From the NCBI GenBank assembly GCA_016748015.1, contig JAAOMT010000577.1, positions 248,001 to 312,000 of the forward strand: DNA of 64,000 nt, given 5' to 3'. Below are positions 12,743 to 64,000 of this stretch, in pieces; positions within the stretch are counted from its first letter, which is position 1; each line of letters starts with the position of its first letter. Under the pieces are notes generated by a model that saw only the letters and a list, made by a program, of their open reading frames with translations, was not told the DNA's origin and searched no databases. The translations under genes were made by a program, and so were the position numbers. Origin of the DNA: Geosiphon pyriformis uo1. Taxonomy: Eukaryota; Fungi; Glomeromycota.

Positions 12743-14134
12743 TTAATACTCTAGATTGTAATGAGGAATAAAAATTGGATCAAAATCGAGATATTCTTTA
12801 GATTTTGGTTCAACGTCAACTACTCTTATATCCGGCTTGAATTTTTCAGATTGTCCGTTATTCTTTACACCGGATTTTAAAAAAGTCTTCTTCCTTTTCT
12901 TGAATGTTGATGAAACAAAAGCGGAGATTCTGAAGGAAATTCGTTTTTTTGTCGAAGCAAACAATAACCTCGTCCTTCGATTAGGATTCTTTCTGACCGT
13001 TGGAATATTAACGCTTACAAAGGATGGGAAGTTTTGACTTGTTGTTTCTCGTCCCATATCACTTAATCCTTTCGAATGTCTTCCTTTATCGTATAACATC
13101 TTCGCAGGCGTTGTTACTTGGTCAACAATCCCATCGCGTTTGCACAATTTGAGACGTTCTTGCGCAACTTTATTTCCAATCGCAGCCGATTGTTTATAAC
13201 ACCGATAAGCGGCAAGGTAATCAGATCGAGTACCAATCCCTTCTCGATAACAATCTCCAACGTACAATAAACCCACCGAATTTCCAGCCATTGCAGCCTT
13301 TGAAGACCATACAAATGCTAAATAATCGTTCTTTGCCACACCACATCCATCAAAATAGCAATTGGCCAGTCGTACGGCTGCATCAGCGTTCTTACCATTT
13401 GCCGATGCTTTGTACCATCGAAATGCCTCGTTCTCATTAATCAATGTCCCTTTTCCATCACGATAAAAATCACCAAGATGTAATTGACTCAGAGTATGTC
13501 CTTTTTCAGCGGCTGCTTTAAACCATTCAAATGCCTTTAAATGGTTAACTGGAGTTCCAACACCATATCTATAAAACATTGCTAATTGTCCTTGCCCTAA
13601 CCCGTAACCACCTTTTGCCGATTTCGTATACCAGTAAAGCGCGTCATCAACGCTTATTTTGGTACCAAATCCTTGACGATAACAATTGGCCAATTGATAT
13701 TGAGCTGCTGGAAAGCCATTTACCGCCGACCTTCTATACCAAACAAAAGCCAAATGATGATCTGGATCAACGCCAAATCCATTCTGATAACACCATCCAA
13801 TCTTATACTGAACAAATGGGTCGACAACTAACGAAGCCGATTGTTTATACCAGAAGAAAGCTTTTTGTTCATCAACCAAAGTTCCGATTCCAAGATTATA
13901 TAAATATGCCAGTAAAGCTATAAAATCAACATTATGCCTTCTTTTCTCGACTAATTCAAAAATCTCTTGGTATTGATATCGTTGAGCTTTGCTCCATTTT
14001 TTCAGAATTTCTGATATTTTAGCGTCGCTTTGGTAATCATCTTTAACGGTGTTAAATAATGTTAAAAGTTTCATTGCGGCTGATTGTCGATGAAGGTTTG
14101 AAACCCATGTTAAAAATGAAAATTTAGATTTCAT
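12743..14134 (-). CDS. Sel1-like repeat protein
   Basis: 463-aa intronless ORF with about 7 SLR repeats (AQYQLANCYRQGFGT..ALYWYTKSA) and a basic C-tail. Confidence 0.92.
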   Translation of the reverse strand: MKSKFSFLTWVSNLHRQSAAMKLLTLFNTVKDDYQSDAKISEILKKWSKAQRYQYQEIFELVEKRRHNVDFIALLAYLYNLGIGTLVDEQKAFFWYKQSASLVVDPFVQYKIGWCYQNGFGVDPDHHLAFVWYRRSAVNGFPAAQYQLANCYRQGFGTKISVDDALYWYTKSAKGGYGLGQGQLAMFYRYGVGTPVNHLKAFEWFKAAAEKGHTLSQLHLGDFYRDGKGTLINENEAFRWYKASANGKNADAAVRLANCYFDGCGVAKNDYLAFVWSSKAAMAGNSVGLLYVGDCYREGIGTRSDYLAAYRCYKQSAAIGNKVAQERLKLCKRDGIVDQVTTPAKMLYDKGRHSKGLSDMGRETTSQNFPSFVSVNIPTVRKNPNRRTRLLFASTKKRISFRISAFVSSTFKKRKKTFLKSGVKNNGQSEKFKPDIRVVDVEPKSKEYLDFDPIFIPHYNLEY

Positions 14135-57030: not shown

Positions 57031-59049
57031 GGTGAATTTTACCACTGTTATGAATGTATGTACATGGAGAAATAAAATCGTTTTTACTAAAATTCACAAC
57101 AACATTTGGGTAATTTTTTTAGTATTTGTTTTAAAGACTACTTTCTCGATCATTTCCTAATCCAGAAATCAATCTCTAGATACGTTATTTTCCTTTTAAA
57201 TTCAAATAAGCACTTTTAATTTGTAATTCAAGACAAAATGATTATAATTTCGTTTTTCTTTGAATGAATAATAAATTTTCAACTACTCAAAACAAATTGA
57301 ATAATTTTTCTTTATTTATCACGTTTCGAAGTGAATTTTTGAAAAAAGCTTTTAAATTCGGGTTTAAAAAAATAAAGTTGCTTAAAAGTGATAATTTGTA
57401 AGCTATGAATGGAATAGCAAATTCTTTATCTAATATTTTTAGAGCAAAGAATTATCTCAATATATAATAAATTATTTGGTTGGCAAGTAAATTTGATATT
57501 TTGTAAAGAAAATATTTAATAAAAGGGTAATTTTCCTGAATTGATATCACAAAATTATGGGTTAATTTAAGAAATAGTTTAGTATCATTGACGGAAAAAT
57601 GAAGATATTATGATAAAAGTTTAGAAAACAAAATTAATAATCATAAATTTGATAAATGACTAACTTGGAGGAATGTTCAAATTAAAAGAAAGAAAAAATA
57701 TTAGATTATTAATATTTTTACAAATTTGTATGTGGTAAAAATTTTAATTGCGGTTGCATCCTATTTTAAAAATGCAACATGAGAATAAATTTGGGAACAA
57801 TTAAAATTAAATAGATGACTTTGTTGAATGCCATACCAAAATTTACTATAATTGATCTGTTTCAAATTTTATTTCCCGCTAATATCATGAATTAGCTAAA
57901 TCGAGATCACTCAGAAATTCGTTTTTGATATGCCTATTCATCAATTTTCATTTTCTCTTGATTATAATTATTATAAAACAAATATGATCAAAACATTTGG
58001 TTATTAAAATAAATAATCTAAAACATTGAAATAATCAAGAGGTAATTATTAAGTTAAATAATTAAGAGAAACTCCCTTTTATATTATAAATTTTAAATTA
58101 AAGTTTCTAATATTTTTTATAATAAAAATTAAAAAGATTCATCAATTAATATATCAATAAAATTAAGAATTTAGCAGAAATTATATATTTTTATAATAAT
58201 CTTGAAAATAACAATAATATAAAATTTAATATATTTTTAAATTAAAAAGATTTTAAGCAAATAAAATTAAAACAATAACAAACCAATAAATTTAAAATAA
58301 TATAAATTATTTAAAACTTGTTAATATATCTTATAAAGTTCAACAATATGGTTGTTAAAATGCAACACATAAAAAATATACAAAATTATTATTTTATAAA
58401 ACTTTGATTTATAATTTTAAACATTAAATATTTTATTTTAATAAATTGCACTATATTACAAATTATTATTACAATATAAATTATAATTAATTGAAACTAC
58501 ATAATTTGAAATTATATTTATTAAATAATTTTAAAAACAAAAATTAAATAGGAAATTACAAACTAAACTACGATTATAAGAAAATTCTTTAAAAATTCAA
58601 TAAAGCGAATTAACTAGAATATAAATATTGATTTTAAAAATTATTAAAATTGTTATTATTGTTGCTTTGTTATTGTTATTGCTATTAAACTATTTTTAAA
58701 GATACTGTTTAATATTGGTATTTAATTACAATAGATTTTGTTGTATTACAATTTATAAATTTATAAAATTTATAATTAAAAAAAGTTTTGACTTTTGTAA
58801 TTATTTATTTTCAACAATTATTATGTAATTTTTGCCTTTAAATATTTTTATATAGTTTTAATACACTAATTATTAATCTAAATAGAAACAACTTTAACAA
58901 TTTTTAAACTTTTTTTTTGTTTTAATAAATATTAATTATTTGTTTAAAAAATACTGAGCTATAATACTAACTGAAAAGCCATTATTTAATATAAACAGAC
59001 TGTAACAAAACCAAACAAAATAAACATTCTATAAATAAAGAGCTTATTA

Positions 59050-59395
59050 TGATGTAGTTGTAAAATTGATCAGTATAACTAATAACATTTTGAAAAGTAA
59101 TAATAGTGTTCATTTATAACTTATAAACTTGTTAATTTTAATGTTCACTTTATCATATCAGAATGTGATGAATATAAACCATAACATGATTAATATAAAA
59201 TTAATTTGCATTAAATTCACTATAAAATCCAAGAATTACAGCACAATTAAAAGCATTTTAAAGAAAGCTCAAGAAGAAAAAATTGCTTTATTTGTTTTTA
59301 AAATCAATGATACCCAAACTCTTTAGAAATATCTGAATAAAGAAAAAATTACTTATAAAATTTATCTTTGCCATTGCTTTGCTTATAATATATTA
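59050..59395 (+). mobile_element. possible hAT transposase relic
   Basis: EKIALFVFKIND..IYLCHCFAYNI resembles the hAT ..D.. / CxAHxLNL region after C->T and G->A decay. Confidence 0.35.
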
Positions 59396-59399
59396 ATTC

Positions 59400-60380
59400 T
59401 TTCTAAACAGTTTTTCTGTACTATTATAATTTTAATTACTAAAGTAACTAAGATAAAAATTAGTAATTCACTAATTATTATTCAAAAACTCAACTGTTTC
59501 TCTCTTGTATTTGCAGAAATATTAGTTTTTTCTTTAAATGATTATTTTTTATCTCTAAAACAACAATAGTAAAGTCTTCATTTTTTAGATCAACAATATT
59601 AGTCTCTAGATGGTAAATATTGGGAGCTTGGAAGTAATTGTTACAAGCAAATTTTGGTAATATATAAGAGCTGTTGGGAATAATTTCACTAATTTTCTTA
59701 ATTGAAAGGGAATGGTTATTAATATATTAATCAAAATTGGGATAATGTTCTTTAATATAATCTCATCTAGTAGATTGAACTAATTCTTGTTCTAAAACAA
59801 CCTTAGTTTCAATAAAATCAAACTTGGCTTGTGGAAATTGTCCCCAAGTTTTGTCAAATTTTTTCTTTTTGCCTATTGGATACCTTTCGCATGGTTTTTT
59901 TTTAAAGGCTGTTACAATAATTAATTCTTTAAACAAATCATCCTTTAAAGCTTGCAATAATTCTTTATTTAGTGATAAAGGGGGCGATCGGTCATAAAAA
60001 GAATGCTGCTCACTATAATGTTGAGTTTCCTTTTCATTTCTTATTCTTTTTAATTCTCCCGAAGCTAATCTTTGAATATTTGTCTTCTCATTTGGGTCAT
60101 CTTTATCAATGTAAGATCATTCTCATGAATTTAATACATCAGCATTGATGGTTGAGCCATGACCTTTAGGATTGTGAGTAGCAATTTCCGCTTTACTTCA
60201 AAATCTTTTAAAATAATCCTTAAAAGAAAGATTTTTCTTTCCCGCTTCTCACAACAAAAAAGGTTTACTGCTTTGTAAACATTCATCTTAATCACAAATA
60301 ATTTTTAATTCTCTCCCTTTGAGTTTGACTTGTTCTTTGATAAGAGTGTAAAGGGAATCAATTTTGTTTTGATTATTCAT
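59400..60380 (-). pseudogene. bacterial-type HAD-fold gene in genetic code 4 (Mollicutes-related endobacterium-like), decaying
   Basis: One ~300-codon intronless frame from ATG 60380, interrupted by five TGA at Trp-like sites and two TAA; IICD[*]DECLQ (DxD motif I), LIIVTA (motif II), FD[*]YINNH (degenerate DD motif IV); C-terminal hydrophobic stretch after a frameshift. Confidence 0.72.
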
Positions 60381-60431
60381 ATTTCTACAGCTTTGGTATT
60401 ATAAATATGTTTTATTTATTGACAGTGTAGA

Positions 60432-62181
60432 TTAAATTGGTTCTGGACAAGTGATATCTTTGAATTCATCCCGGACAAATGGACGAATATTGTGATAAAG
60501 GTATTCTTGCCTTCTGTAATCCAAAGGAGGAGGGGTTAATACTAGGATTGAAAAGGACTTAATTTCTTTGGTAATTTCAGAAACACTTGCTTTTCTAGTT
60601 TTTAACAGATTAAATTCAGTATACGAACCATTAGCAACCAGCTGAACTTTGACAATACCAGGTTTGGCTGCTTCAAATACAATATGCTGATATTTTTGTA
60701 AACCACTCAATTTTTTAAAGAAAATACCTAACACAGAATTAAGATCTAAATATTGAAAACCTTTGCCGTTTTCATAGCACTGAGCTTTGTTTAATCCTGC
60801 AGTACTTGACATTTTCACAACCTTAACAATATGATCCACACAATCTACCGTCGTTTTTCGATAAAGCCTTTTAATCAATCCAAAACTGCCATCACATTTA
60901 AATTTAGTATGTCCTGGTACCATGAAATTTAATTCGATACTTTCATAATAGCCGCAGAATACTAAATATAGGTAAAATCAAATAGTGGCATTATTTTTAT
61001 TCTGTCCTCCCGCGTTACCGCAAGTAATCTTTAGATGTTTTTCGCCTTTATTCAATCGTTTAATCCCATCGAATACCATGCTTAGCGTACCATTAGGACC
61101 TTTGCCGATAATTTCATCTTCATCGAGAACGTAATTAATTTGTTCACGTACTGCTTCATCTTGGATACCAAATAAATGTACTTTACGCGGACTAAGATAA
61201 TAAATCTTACTTACCTGTTGATCGGAATGGGGAACGTGAACGTTTTGTGCTCAATCGTAACTGTAATGCGCAGTCGCGTCAATGCTACAATAGGCTTTAT
61301 ATCTTGTTATAAAATGCTCGTTTTACTAATTTTCTCTGTTGTTCTGCTAATTTCGTATTTTTGTTGTAATAGTTTCTCTCTAACTTAGCTTTAACTAAAT
61401 GTTCTTTGTATTTTTTCAGTAAATCTCTTGCTTCTTCTTCCTTGCGAGCATTATACTGCAAGTCATTCCGAAAATGTTGGCAAGTATCGCATAAATCTGT
61501 TCTCGGACTCATAATTTGAATATAAGGCGTTAATTGGTGTCATAACTTACGAAACGCATCATATTTTAACAATTTCAACGTGCTATCGTTTTCGAGGCCT
61601 GCGATAAAATCATGATAAACCGATTTATAACTCGTTTCGGCTGGCAATAATGTAAGCGATTGAGTAATGCGATTAACATTTCTACCAGGACTTGGTAACC
61701 CATGAATTTCAGCATAGTTTTCAAGAAAATTCTTCACAGATGTAGCAACAGTTATATCAATGGTTATCTTGGTTTTCCATCGTGGCACCTTTTTTACATT
61801 ACCATGAACACGTGGTATTATACCATTCGTCGCTAGGTGGTTTCTGACGTTTTCGAAATGAGTGCGACTAATTCCTAACATATTGAGATACGTTTTCTGG
61901 CAGAGAGGCGTATTGCGATCTCAATAGTAAAAAGTTCTCTTATTAGTACGCGTTTTCTTTTTAAGACGTCGGCTGGCCGTTATTCCTCCACCATTCATTG
62001 CTTTCAGCTGGGCCATTAAAAATATATCTTGCTCGGATCTAGAGAGGGCTTGAAACGCTTCACGTAATTCAGCAAAATTCTCTCTCGGAATCATTTTTGA
62101 GCAACCACAACTGCATCCTATTTCCAAGAAACGCATGGCTTTTTCATATTCAGTCGAACCGTTATAATTATAGTTTTCCAT
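60432..62181 (-). mobile_element. Sola-like DDE transposase gene read with TGA=Trp (~582 aa), one frameshift
   Basis: Track ORFs join into one frame: GCSCGC, PLCQK, PRVHGN, PRTDLCDTC, HYSYD[W]AQ, C(D>G)NAGGQNKNN, MVPGHTKFKCDGSFGLIK; four TGA at Trp positions; +1 A at 61321-61324; no introns. Confidence 0.8.
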
Positions 62182-62519
62182 ATACAGGTATTCCTATATA
62201 TAATTTTATGTATAATCCAGGCGTATATTCAAATAGAACATTAATTTAATTTCGTTGATTGAAATTTAAACTGATTGACCATAATTTCTCCTGTATAATT
62301 AATTCATCAAACATTACTATTTATATTGATACATTCCAAATTCACATTCTTTGCAAATGATAATACTGATCAAATCATTCTTATTCTACTCACTTCATCA
62401 ACAATAATACACTCAACTGAACAAGATACATGAAGTCTGAGAAGAGCTCAAATATATGGGTAGCATTTTTTATTTAATATAAGTCACTGACATATCACAC
62501 AGTATTGAAGCCATTATCT

Positions 62520-62810
62520 AGCATGTACAAGTCATAAGCTGGCAGGGTGCCAATCAATATCAGGATTCAGGAGGGGTGGGTAAACAACCTCTCCAACCTT
62601 ACCAGACCCGTCAAAGTCTATTATCTTTACTGAATGAGGTTTGAAAGTCTCATATCACCATGCACAAAACCCTGGTTATGCATTTTCTTTACTGACTCTA
62701 TTGCTTTCTTCTGTATGAACAGCTTTTTGTCTTGAGCAAGAGAAGATAGTGAGCTATATTCCCTCAGCTGTTCCATAATCACAACACACCAAATGTTTCC
62801 ACATCCCATA
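62520..62810 (-). pseudogene. Crinkler-type protein kinase fragment
   Basis: VVIME; MHNQGFVHGDMRLSNL; IIDFDGSGKVGEVVYPPLLNPDIDWHP; YDLYML; frameshifted and truncated. Confidence 0.75.
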
Positions 62811-63430
62811 AAAAGCAGTCACCGTCTATCGTGTGGTCATATTTTTCATTGTATCTGTGTTGAGAAAAAACTATTACTTTCGCGAAAAGAATCATGTCCT
62901 TATCCTAACTGTACGTCATCAATAATTGGTAGAATGGAAAAACATCTCACGATAGTATCTCAAGGAAATCCGGACGAGGATATGGTGGATGTGAATGACT
63001 CGTGAAGGGAGAATACTCCCATATCTGAAGCCGAACATATCGCTCAAACAGTAAAAGTGCAAACTTAGGGCCTAACAAAAGATCTCTCAGTAAGGAAGCG
63101 AATTAAAAAAGAAGACTTGCCCTCACTAAAGAGACTTATATCTAAATTGACCGCTGAAACTTCTGAGACTTCTAAAATAGCTGAAGCATACAGTAAAAAC
63201 ACAACGGATCTTTTACACCTCAATAATATCATTACTCATGCAGAATCCCGAAACGAAAGCACAAACTGAGAAGTTATTCATTGCTATTATTGTTTTGGCG
63301 ATATTCTGTCACAGCGATTAAACTATTATAAAAGTTTAGAATGCGGTGACTTATCGGTTAATGAAGTTCGAAAACAATTGGGGACAAAATCTCAAACGAC
63401 ACTACGTAAAAGAACTCAAAGGGTATTTGC
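62800..63430 (+). pseudogene. RING-finger/helical protein pseudogene (Glomeromycota multicopy family)
   Basis: LSCGHIFHCICVEK..CPYPNC, then LKRLISKL..IITHAESRNESTN*EVIHCYYCFG..VNEVRKQL; stops and frameshifts. Confidence 0.65.
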
Positions 63431-63779
63431 TCTTCTTAATAGCATTTTCATAGATAGGGAGATATTTGTAATCATGTGTTTACTGCGCCTGTGAACTAAT
63501 GTACTTCACCGTTAATTGGCCCACTTCTGAATTAGAATGTGATTTAGCTTAACAAATTTTCCTCCTCAGGAGTTTTACCTGATTTGGGAGACCAGTTCTA
63601 GAAAATTCAAGCAAATATCACAATGACGCTTTTATTGATCCAAACACTGCAGTAAGAATCAAGCTAAGAGTTGAAATACACTTTTACGAGTATATACTTT
63701 CAGAATCCACGGGGATCCATGCAACTTTGCAAAGCCGCTAGTTTAATTTTACTATTGCTGTACACTTTGTTACACACGT

Positions 63780-64000
63780 TTCAGAATGAGCTCAAAACTT
63801 GAAGCTAAAGATCTACCTTGCCCTTTGGAACCTCTCCCTATTGATCTCACACCTTCCCTCCATCCTCCATCATCCACTCATATCTTCCCTCAAACATTAA
63901 ACACATTGCTCGTTTAATCCAATCAGCTGTCCTCTGGACCATTTGGATCTCCTACACTCAAACATCCTTTGGCTCCTCTAATCCCCCCTCTAATCCTGAA
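63780..64000 (+). mobile_element. possible LINE ORF2 C-terminal fragment
   Basis: C-rich stretch encoding RLIQSAVLWTIWISYTQTSF, like the LWxIW..F motif at the end of L1/Tx1-type ORF2; runs off the window. Confidence 0.4.

Follow-up and report, generated by a model that had tools for sequence, protein, structure and literature searches.

A code-4 transposase gene within a Sola1-like, cargo-carrying transposon of the Geosiphon pyriformis genome

Two adjacent genes written in genetic code 4 (TGA read as tryptophan), lying in a 64,000-nucleotide stretch of the Geosiphon pyriformis genome (the window; positions 248,001 to 312,000 of contig JAAOMT010000577.1), form the interior of a transposon of ~12.2 kb that is bounded by terminal inverted repeats (TIRs), with ends at ~58,993 and ~71,237 (a window-equivalent position, ~7 kb past the window). 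From one end to the other it holds a TIR, fungal cargo in the standard code, a DUF7869 transposase, cargo in code 4 and the second TIR. We propose, with a probability of roughly two in three, that the transposase is translated in Mollicutes-related endobacteria (MRE) and that the element transposes into host chromosomes. A preliminary description of this DNA had seen an island of MRE sequence in the host; the code, the origin of the downstream gene and the nuclear site stand, and the unit and the mechanism are replaced here.

Architecture of a Sola1-like element

The near end of the window copy was read directly, and positions in its far half come from match tables. At the near end, an ATAT target site of the AWWT class (58,989–58,992, plus strand) adjoins a decayed TIR (58,993–59,364, plus strand) that constitutes the 3' end of the element and is 80% identical to its partner (G000:C771:318826-319227, G000 being the Geosiphon genome); a repeat finder returned no TIR pair within the window because this partner lies outside it. 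The junctions formerly placed at ~59.4 and ~62.2 kb are thus both internal to the element, and what had been taken for an AT-rich host repeat on the left (59,480–58,993) is the element's own 3' region and TIR. Inside or near the TIR lies the TAG-broken remnant of a small conserved accessory ORF (59,189–59,389, plus strand). Intact versions among its 701 homologs are 80–110 residues long, poor in Trp and in many cases terminated by an NLS-like PRKKRK; their place is either within the TIR or immediately ahead of the transposase.

Six-frame translation bears out the earlier account of two co-oriented, intronless genes on the minus strand, a transposase-like gene (62,181 to 60,432) and a HAD-like gene (60,380 to 59,478) separated by 51 nt. 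The transposase is preceded by a conserved leader (62,192–62,209, minus strand) with a Shine–Dalgarno-like AGGA 10 nt before the ATG, a signal that had been noticed previously and that is kept in two of three clades. A TATAAT at 60,398–60,403, once read as a promoter box, is private to the window copy, most other copies having TATATT, and promoter-like matches occur at chance level (18 versus 20.4). Upstream of the transposase, the cargo comprises a broken fungal protein-kinase-like remnant that uses TGG for Trp (62,535–62,904, minus strand) and a broken fungal RING-finger-like gene divergent from the transposase (62,736–63,491, plus strand; zf-RING_2, E = 0.007, below cut-off), with a GT..AG intron at 62,639–62,722 (plus strand); the spliced upstream gene was queried as separate stop-free pieces. 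Copies cease to resemble one another at ~62,209 owing to differences in upstream cargo: ahead of Geosiphon transposases there is usually a fungal kinase-like gene with TGG codons, and kinase- or Crinkler-like genes take this place in many copies. The genes downstream are likewise variable, ranging from several HAD paralogs and an LRR gene to further code-4 ORFs.

Inspection of the transposase places it with DUF7869 (E = 9e-18 for the full-length protein P0410), with a weak match to DDE_Tnp_ISAZ013 (E = 0.045) and conserved aspartates in the motifs YSYD, CDNAGGQNKN and GHTKFKCD. The protein has no sequence match in the PDB, and its AlphaFold model (pLDDT 45) is unusable for fold assignment; its nearest Atlas clusters are 85–100% eukaryotic. 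A 4-bp AWWT target site (ATAT) is a hallmark of Sola1 transposons (Bao et al. 2009, as summarized in PMC3845634). The same site appears in our set: one complete element from another fungus (L037, JGI 3300063414) has 492-bp TIRs that are 99.6% identical and ATAT on both sides, and, across all loci, 15 of 20 TIR tips are flanked by ATAT and 18 of 20 by AWWT. Between its ends, L037 carries fungal genes of Crinkler-like type, a code-4 transposase that stays open over 593 codons and has two TGAs, and a code-4 LRR gene. We therefore describe the element as Sola1-like, a putative membership that rests on TIR and target site rather than on comparison with Sola1 proteins. The element shares with Sola1 the AWWT site, G-rich TIR tips, a single eukaryote-type transposase of ~590 residues and MITE-like derivatives; it differs from Sola1 in its code-4 transposase with a Shine–Dalgarno-like leader, in TIRs of 370–490 bp that may hold a small ORF, and in cargo written in two genetic codes.

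Two recurrent features of related elements were also seen. Of 18 intact elements, 9 have a further, internal copy of the 23-nt TIR core motif ahead of the transposase, 55–105 nt upstream of the YEKA motif (L039, L040, L041, L053, L087 and others; shuffle p <= 0.01), which is not detectable in the window copy; it may be either an autoregulatory binding site or the remnant of an inner end, in which case the element would be composite. Code-4 cargo also includes a recurrent pair of genes, one for a coiled-coil protein (starting MVN...) and, within the next 3–13 nt, one for a Cys-rich zinc-finger-like protein (L038, L040, L042, L044, L047, L048, L058, L064). Elsewhere in the window, a cluster of coiled-coil ORFs (16,883–21,835) includes one of 417 residues that, by eye, ends in a putative jacalin-like lectin domain, and an intronless ORF of 463 residues (12,743–14,134) is, also by eye, putatively Sel1-repeat-like.

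TGA as a tryptophan codon

Both window genes are readable only with TGA as Trp. Together they contain 10 in-frame TGA codons, two TGG and no TAG. Four of the TGAs are in the transposase (first codon base at 61,923, 61,542, 61,253 and 60,980), which has a single TGG, and six are in the HAD-like gene (60,251, 60,200, 60,125, 60,119, 59,765 and 59,492). The preliminary tally of nine TGA against two TGG and no TAG had missed 59,492 and was otherwise correct; the sites it gave are real, its coordinates marking the last codon base, so that the first base lies 2 higher. Host genes in the window, by comparison, use 31 TGG for Trp and TGA serves as a stop. In the transposase all four TGAs occupy columns that are TGA or TGG in relatives, and 61,923 and 60,980 are fixed across nearly all Geosiphon copies. 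Among 37 full-length HAD homologs, the column of 60,200 is W in 31, that of 59,765 is W in 21, and that of 60,251 is Y, W or F; 60,125, 60,119 and 59,492 lie where alignment is poor, yet are TGA in most Geosiphon genome copies. The HAD TGAs are common to subfamilies with only 68–69% likeness.

The window copy itself is dead. Its transposase has a +1 frameshift near 61,321, and its HAD-like gene has TAA at 60,290, in a column that is W in 35 of the 37 homologs, and at 59,729, together with a DD-to-NN change in motif IV. Of the lesions proposed earlier, this DD-to-NN change and the TGA-to-TAA change at 60,290 are genuine; the PNFD motif is common to other copies. The TAA at 59,729 is derived from TTA. 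Measured against the copy majority, the G-to-A decay said to rise leftward shows no gradient, with GC-to-AT versus AT-to-GC differences, from right to left, of 18/20, 19/15, 2/3, 10/5 and 8/11.

In the wider family, over 31,206 aligned codons of soil transposase loci, TGA occurs 159 times on Trp columns versus 39 times elsewhere, and 23 transposase frames are open (without TAA, TAG or frameshift), each with two to four TGAs. At each of the five Trp sites some lineages have TGA and others TGG, a mixture that spans three clades (a quick tree of the 23, for drawing only), and median dN/dS in open transposases stands at 0.074 for the part beyond the first Trp site and at 0.097 for that beyond the last. 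We also considered the lack of frames with zero or one TGA among the 23, which is not significant given their relatedness. The Trp columns, open frames and dN/dS values uphold the earlier assignment to code 4; purifying selection keeps the transposase only in a reading with TGA as Trp, and TGA in this family is a genuine synonymous Trp codon under selection.

The share of Trp codons that are TGA differs along the element, being 0.82 in downstream cargo, 0.52 in the transposase and 0.02 in upstream fungal cargo (1/45); therefore, one element holds genes selected for two translation systems. In the downstream cargo, the A-ending share at Lys, Glu and Gln codons (0.72–0.83) matches the TGA share, and genes are intronless, carry up to 8–10 TGAs and lie 3–13 nt apart in an operon-like manner. 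The intermediate TGA share and higher GC of the transposase suggest that a gene of eukaryotic type has become adapted to code 4 in part. The upstream cargo shows no recoding, so it would either have spent little time under MRE mutation pressure or be held by nuclear selection.

Copies, nuclear location and transcripts

The Geosiphon genome contains 44 transposase and 19 HAD DNA matches, mostly in the same order, as well as 84 TIR tips (versus none in the control); inward-facing TIR pairs 4–8.6 kb apart surround transposase copies. The window element is thus one of dozens of nuclear copies. Beyond Geosiphon, we collected 79 soil-metagenome loci in which, wherever enough DNA is present, a common layout recurs, with fungal cargo in the standard code, then the transposase, then one code-4 gene or two separated by a few nucleotides, and finally the TIR; annotated relatives of the transposase occur in Ambispora, Diversispora, Gigaspora and Dentiscutata assemblies. 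A locus that might have been a circle (L048) proved to be two head-to-head elements 335 bp apart (L048:5087-6255). Their 428-bp TIRs hold the small ORF, and a 98.7% identical element occurs in another sample (L063).

Such abundance could in principle reflect a few MRE imports that were then amplified in the nucleus as non-autonomous elements by a helper transposase in the standard code. Short TIR-bounded derivatives in Geosiphon (pairs 0.4–1.9 kb apart), and the identity of some copies over short stretches, would fit such an origin. The window copy, however, differs from other Geosiphon copies at dS 0.47–0.62 with dN/dS of 0.05–0.12, and is no closer to them than to soil copies; therefore, these lineages diverged while translated, and are not duplicates of one dead insert. 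Many different cargo sets are carried, and the Geosiphon genome holds no long standard-code DUF7869 frame apart from probable N-runs; no intact helper is in view, although assembly gaps could hide one. Amplification by a hidden helper consequently seems to us quite unlikely. As a separate observation, TIR pairs that have no transposase match, and are MITE-like or otherwise non-autonomous, lie at C348:37692-38112, C718:2169520-2170058, C787:141772-143644 and C669:920973-926193 of the Geosiphon genome.

Short-read contigs of run X1, possibly the assembly's own sample, span the junction between TIR and host (58,311–59,141, depth 80) and the boundary between transposase and fungal cargo (62,011–64,000, depth 84) without differences, and contigs of the HAD region have depths of 61–78. 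Both spans are at flank-like depth, which sustains the preliminary claim of true nuclear integration as opposed to mis-assembly. That the codon pattern is an artefact, either of TGG-to-TGA decay in a standard-code transposon or of host/MRE mis-assembly, has some surface appeal in an AT-rich genome whose copies show G-to-A damage, and MRE contigs often contaminate such assemblies (PMC11423566). The difference-free contigs, the concentration of TGA on Trp columns and its presence in otherwise open frames under purifying selection make this account extremely improbable.

Two further depth anomalies concern the copies as a group. A contig at 920x over 60,411–60,594 was considered as a sign of an MRE reservoir and set aside, since identical nuclear copies explain its depth. 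A transposase variant within 61,873–61,961 (61,920 C>T and 61,927 G>A) reaches depth 632 in X1, is present in both RNA-like runs described below and matches only L035 among the fetched copies; it may represent a transcribed subfamily of high copy number that has collapsed into gaps of the assembly.

Two other runs skip the GT..AG intron in the upstream cargo; therefore, these runs are RNA-like and the upstream cargo is spliced in the nucleus. Both contain transposase-like pieces, in which the TGA at 61,923 is unchanged, and neither has anything over the HAD gene; contigs of this kind lose rare variants and cannot give strand, level or compartment. Transposase-like RNA would suit an element confined to the nucleus that depends on UGA readthrough in the fungal cytosol, whether by a suppressor tRNA, in a context-dependent manner or by A-to-I editing of UGA to UGG, as would the nuclear flanks of every copy whose flanks are visible and the NLS-like accessory protein. 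Host genes, however, end in TGA, and the fungal cargo of the same element avoids it, whereas the code-4 cargo carries its many TGAs in intronless, operon-like genes; the unedited codon at 61,923, as far as such contigs can report it, also speaks against editing. Readthrough in the host is therefore, in our judgment, unlikely.

Proposed endobacterial translation and possible two-way gene traffic

In 37 homologs of the downstream cargo gene of the window copy, the D-W-D and DD motifs of the HAD family are at least 90% conserved. The model of one homolog has pLDDT 88, and nearly all of its top Foldseek matches are HAD proteins (E only ~2e-3); Atlas clusters give NT5C/HAD at 0.92–0.94, and the family has no Pfam match. 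These data argue for a HAD-superfamily, phosphatase-like protein resembling NT5C, or 5'(3')-deoxyribonucleotidase: the cargo gene shares with the superfamily a DxD motif I (DWDE here), a DD motif IV and a Rossmannoid model, and the window copy departs from it in having lost motif IV and been inactivated.

Full-length HAD homologs sit in code-4 contigs (L117–L121) that are 81–91% coding and 28–35% GC, with XerC/D integrases, AIG1 GTPases, LRR and kinase genes, ParA, PemK and AG repeats as neighbors; one homolog lies among gyrB-gyrA, leuS and greA. Annotation of MRE uses table 4, and these bacteria possess kinases and LRR genes derived from their hosts and undergo host switching (PMC10507103, PMC11423566), and their mobile regions hold XerC/D integrases, IS630-type DDE_3 genes, ParA and toxin-antitoxin systems (PMC4916391). 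The contig features fit these published descriptions, and on such contig hallmarks the HAD cargo is probably of MRE type, in line with the origin first suggested for it. Among these contigs, L121:1-4369 shows a gyrB-gyrA fusion (1872 aa called), and L120 (GCA_958305055.1, Entrophospora sp. SA101), gene-dense and annotated as fungal with false introns, holds two divergent HAD paralogs.

Many fungal mitochondria use code 4, and the code-4 compartment might accordingly be a mitochondrion, a mitochondrial plasmid or some other code-4 replicon instead of MRE. Cargo homologs that lie among XerC/D, ParA, PemK, gyrase and leuS genes, and the lack of any match among plasmids or in IMG/VR, leave this a very improbable source.

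Passive, NUMT-like integration of MRE chromosomal DNA, the mechanism first put forward, would account for the code, the MRE-type HAD gene and the true nuclear location. It is largely refuted by the precise TIR ends flanked by ATAT; in addition, no MRE housekeeping DNA lies alongside and fungal cargo lies inside the TIRs, so that we consider it a remote prospect. What the element has in common with known endosymbiont-to-host transfers (Wolbachia insertions, NUMTs and gene transfer between MRE and fungi; PMC10507103) is symbiont-coded, untranslatable, decaying DNA; it differs from them in its transposon ends and target site, its dozens of copies, its occurrence in several fungi and the host genes inside it.

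Under the reading that we favor, translation of the transposase in endobacteria, a Sola1-like eukaryotic cut-and-paste DNA transposon would have become dependent on MRE translation. Copies resident in MRE would supply the transposase, made in the bacterial cytoplasm, and either the whole transpososome or the enzyme itself, perhaps helped by the NLS-like small protein, would then reach the host nucleus, with insertion at AWWT sites. A nuclear element might pick up and express fungal genes and, from MRE, acquire bacterial ones, and nuclear copies, having no transposase supply of their own, would decay unless remobilized from the symbiont. Host switching by MRE would spread the family among unrelated fungi. 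The family seems to move DNA between symbiont and host nucleus. A stronger form, in which the element is an obligate two-genome shuttle that is translatable in the endobacterium alone, inserts in both the MRE chromosome and the nucleus and carries genes both ways, strikes us as an even wager. All long flanks examined are eukaryotic (L036, L037, L123–L126); no element with bacterial chromosomal flanks was found, GTDB scanned with the HAD gene and with the transposase, IMG/VR, and plasmids searched by tblastn all giving no match, although public MRE genomes are scarce. The MRE contigs on which HAD homologs lie have neither the transposase nor the TIR.

Pack-MULEs, Crinkler-associated transposons and Starships are cargo-carrying eukaryotic elements that capture host genes. 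The present element resembles them in the kinase, Crinkler-like and RING genes between its ends, and is unlike them in that their mobility genes use the code of the host and they are not known to include a code-4 bacterial operon. Its HAD cargo family lives in regions of the kind described as mobile in MRE (PMC4916391), and its mobilizer is instead a putative DDE transposase of eukaryotic type. In a broad survey, no conclusive case emerged of a eukaryotic DDE transposon having passed to prokaryotes (bioRxiv 10.1101/2021.09.26.461848), and the family described here would run against the finding that such transposons do not establish there. Our literature search returned no description of this transposon family; the element would be categorically new if the two-genome cycle were confirmed.

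Horizontal acquisition accounts for about 5% of the genes in MRE genomes (PMC13315312); host-like kinases and LRR proteins are among them (PMC10507103). No described vehicle for this exchange was found in the literature. The element offers a concrete, testable one, in which the Trp codon of each gene traces the ribosome under which it was selected. Elements of this type are annotated in error as spliced genes of the fungus, or would be thrown out as contaminants, and they may open a genetic route into uncultured mycorrhizal fungi and the endobacteria that live in them. If the shuttle is real, the known exchange between MRE and fungi would have in it a natural vector, as would, through host switching, the transfer of kinase and Crinkler-like genes from fungus to fungus.
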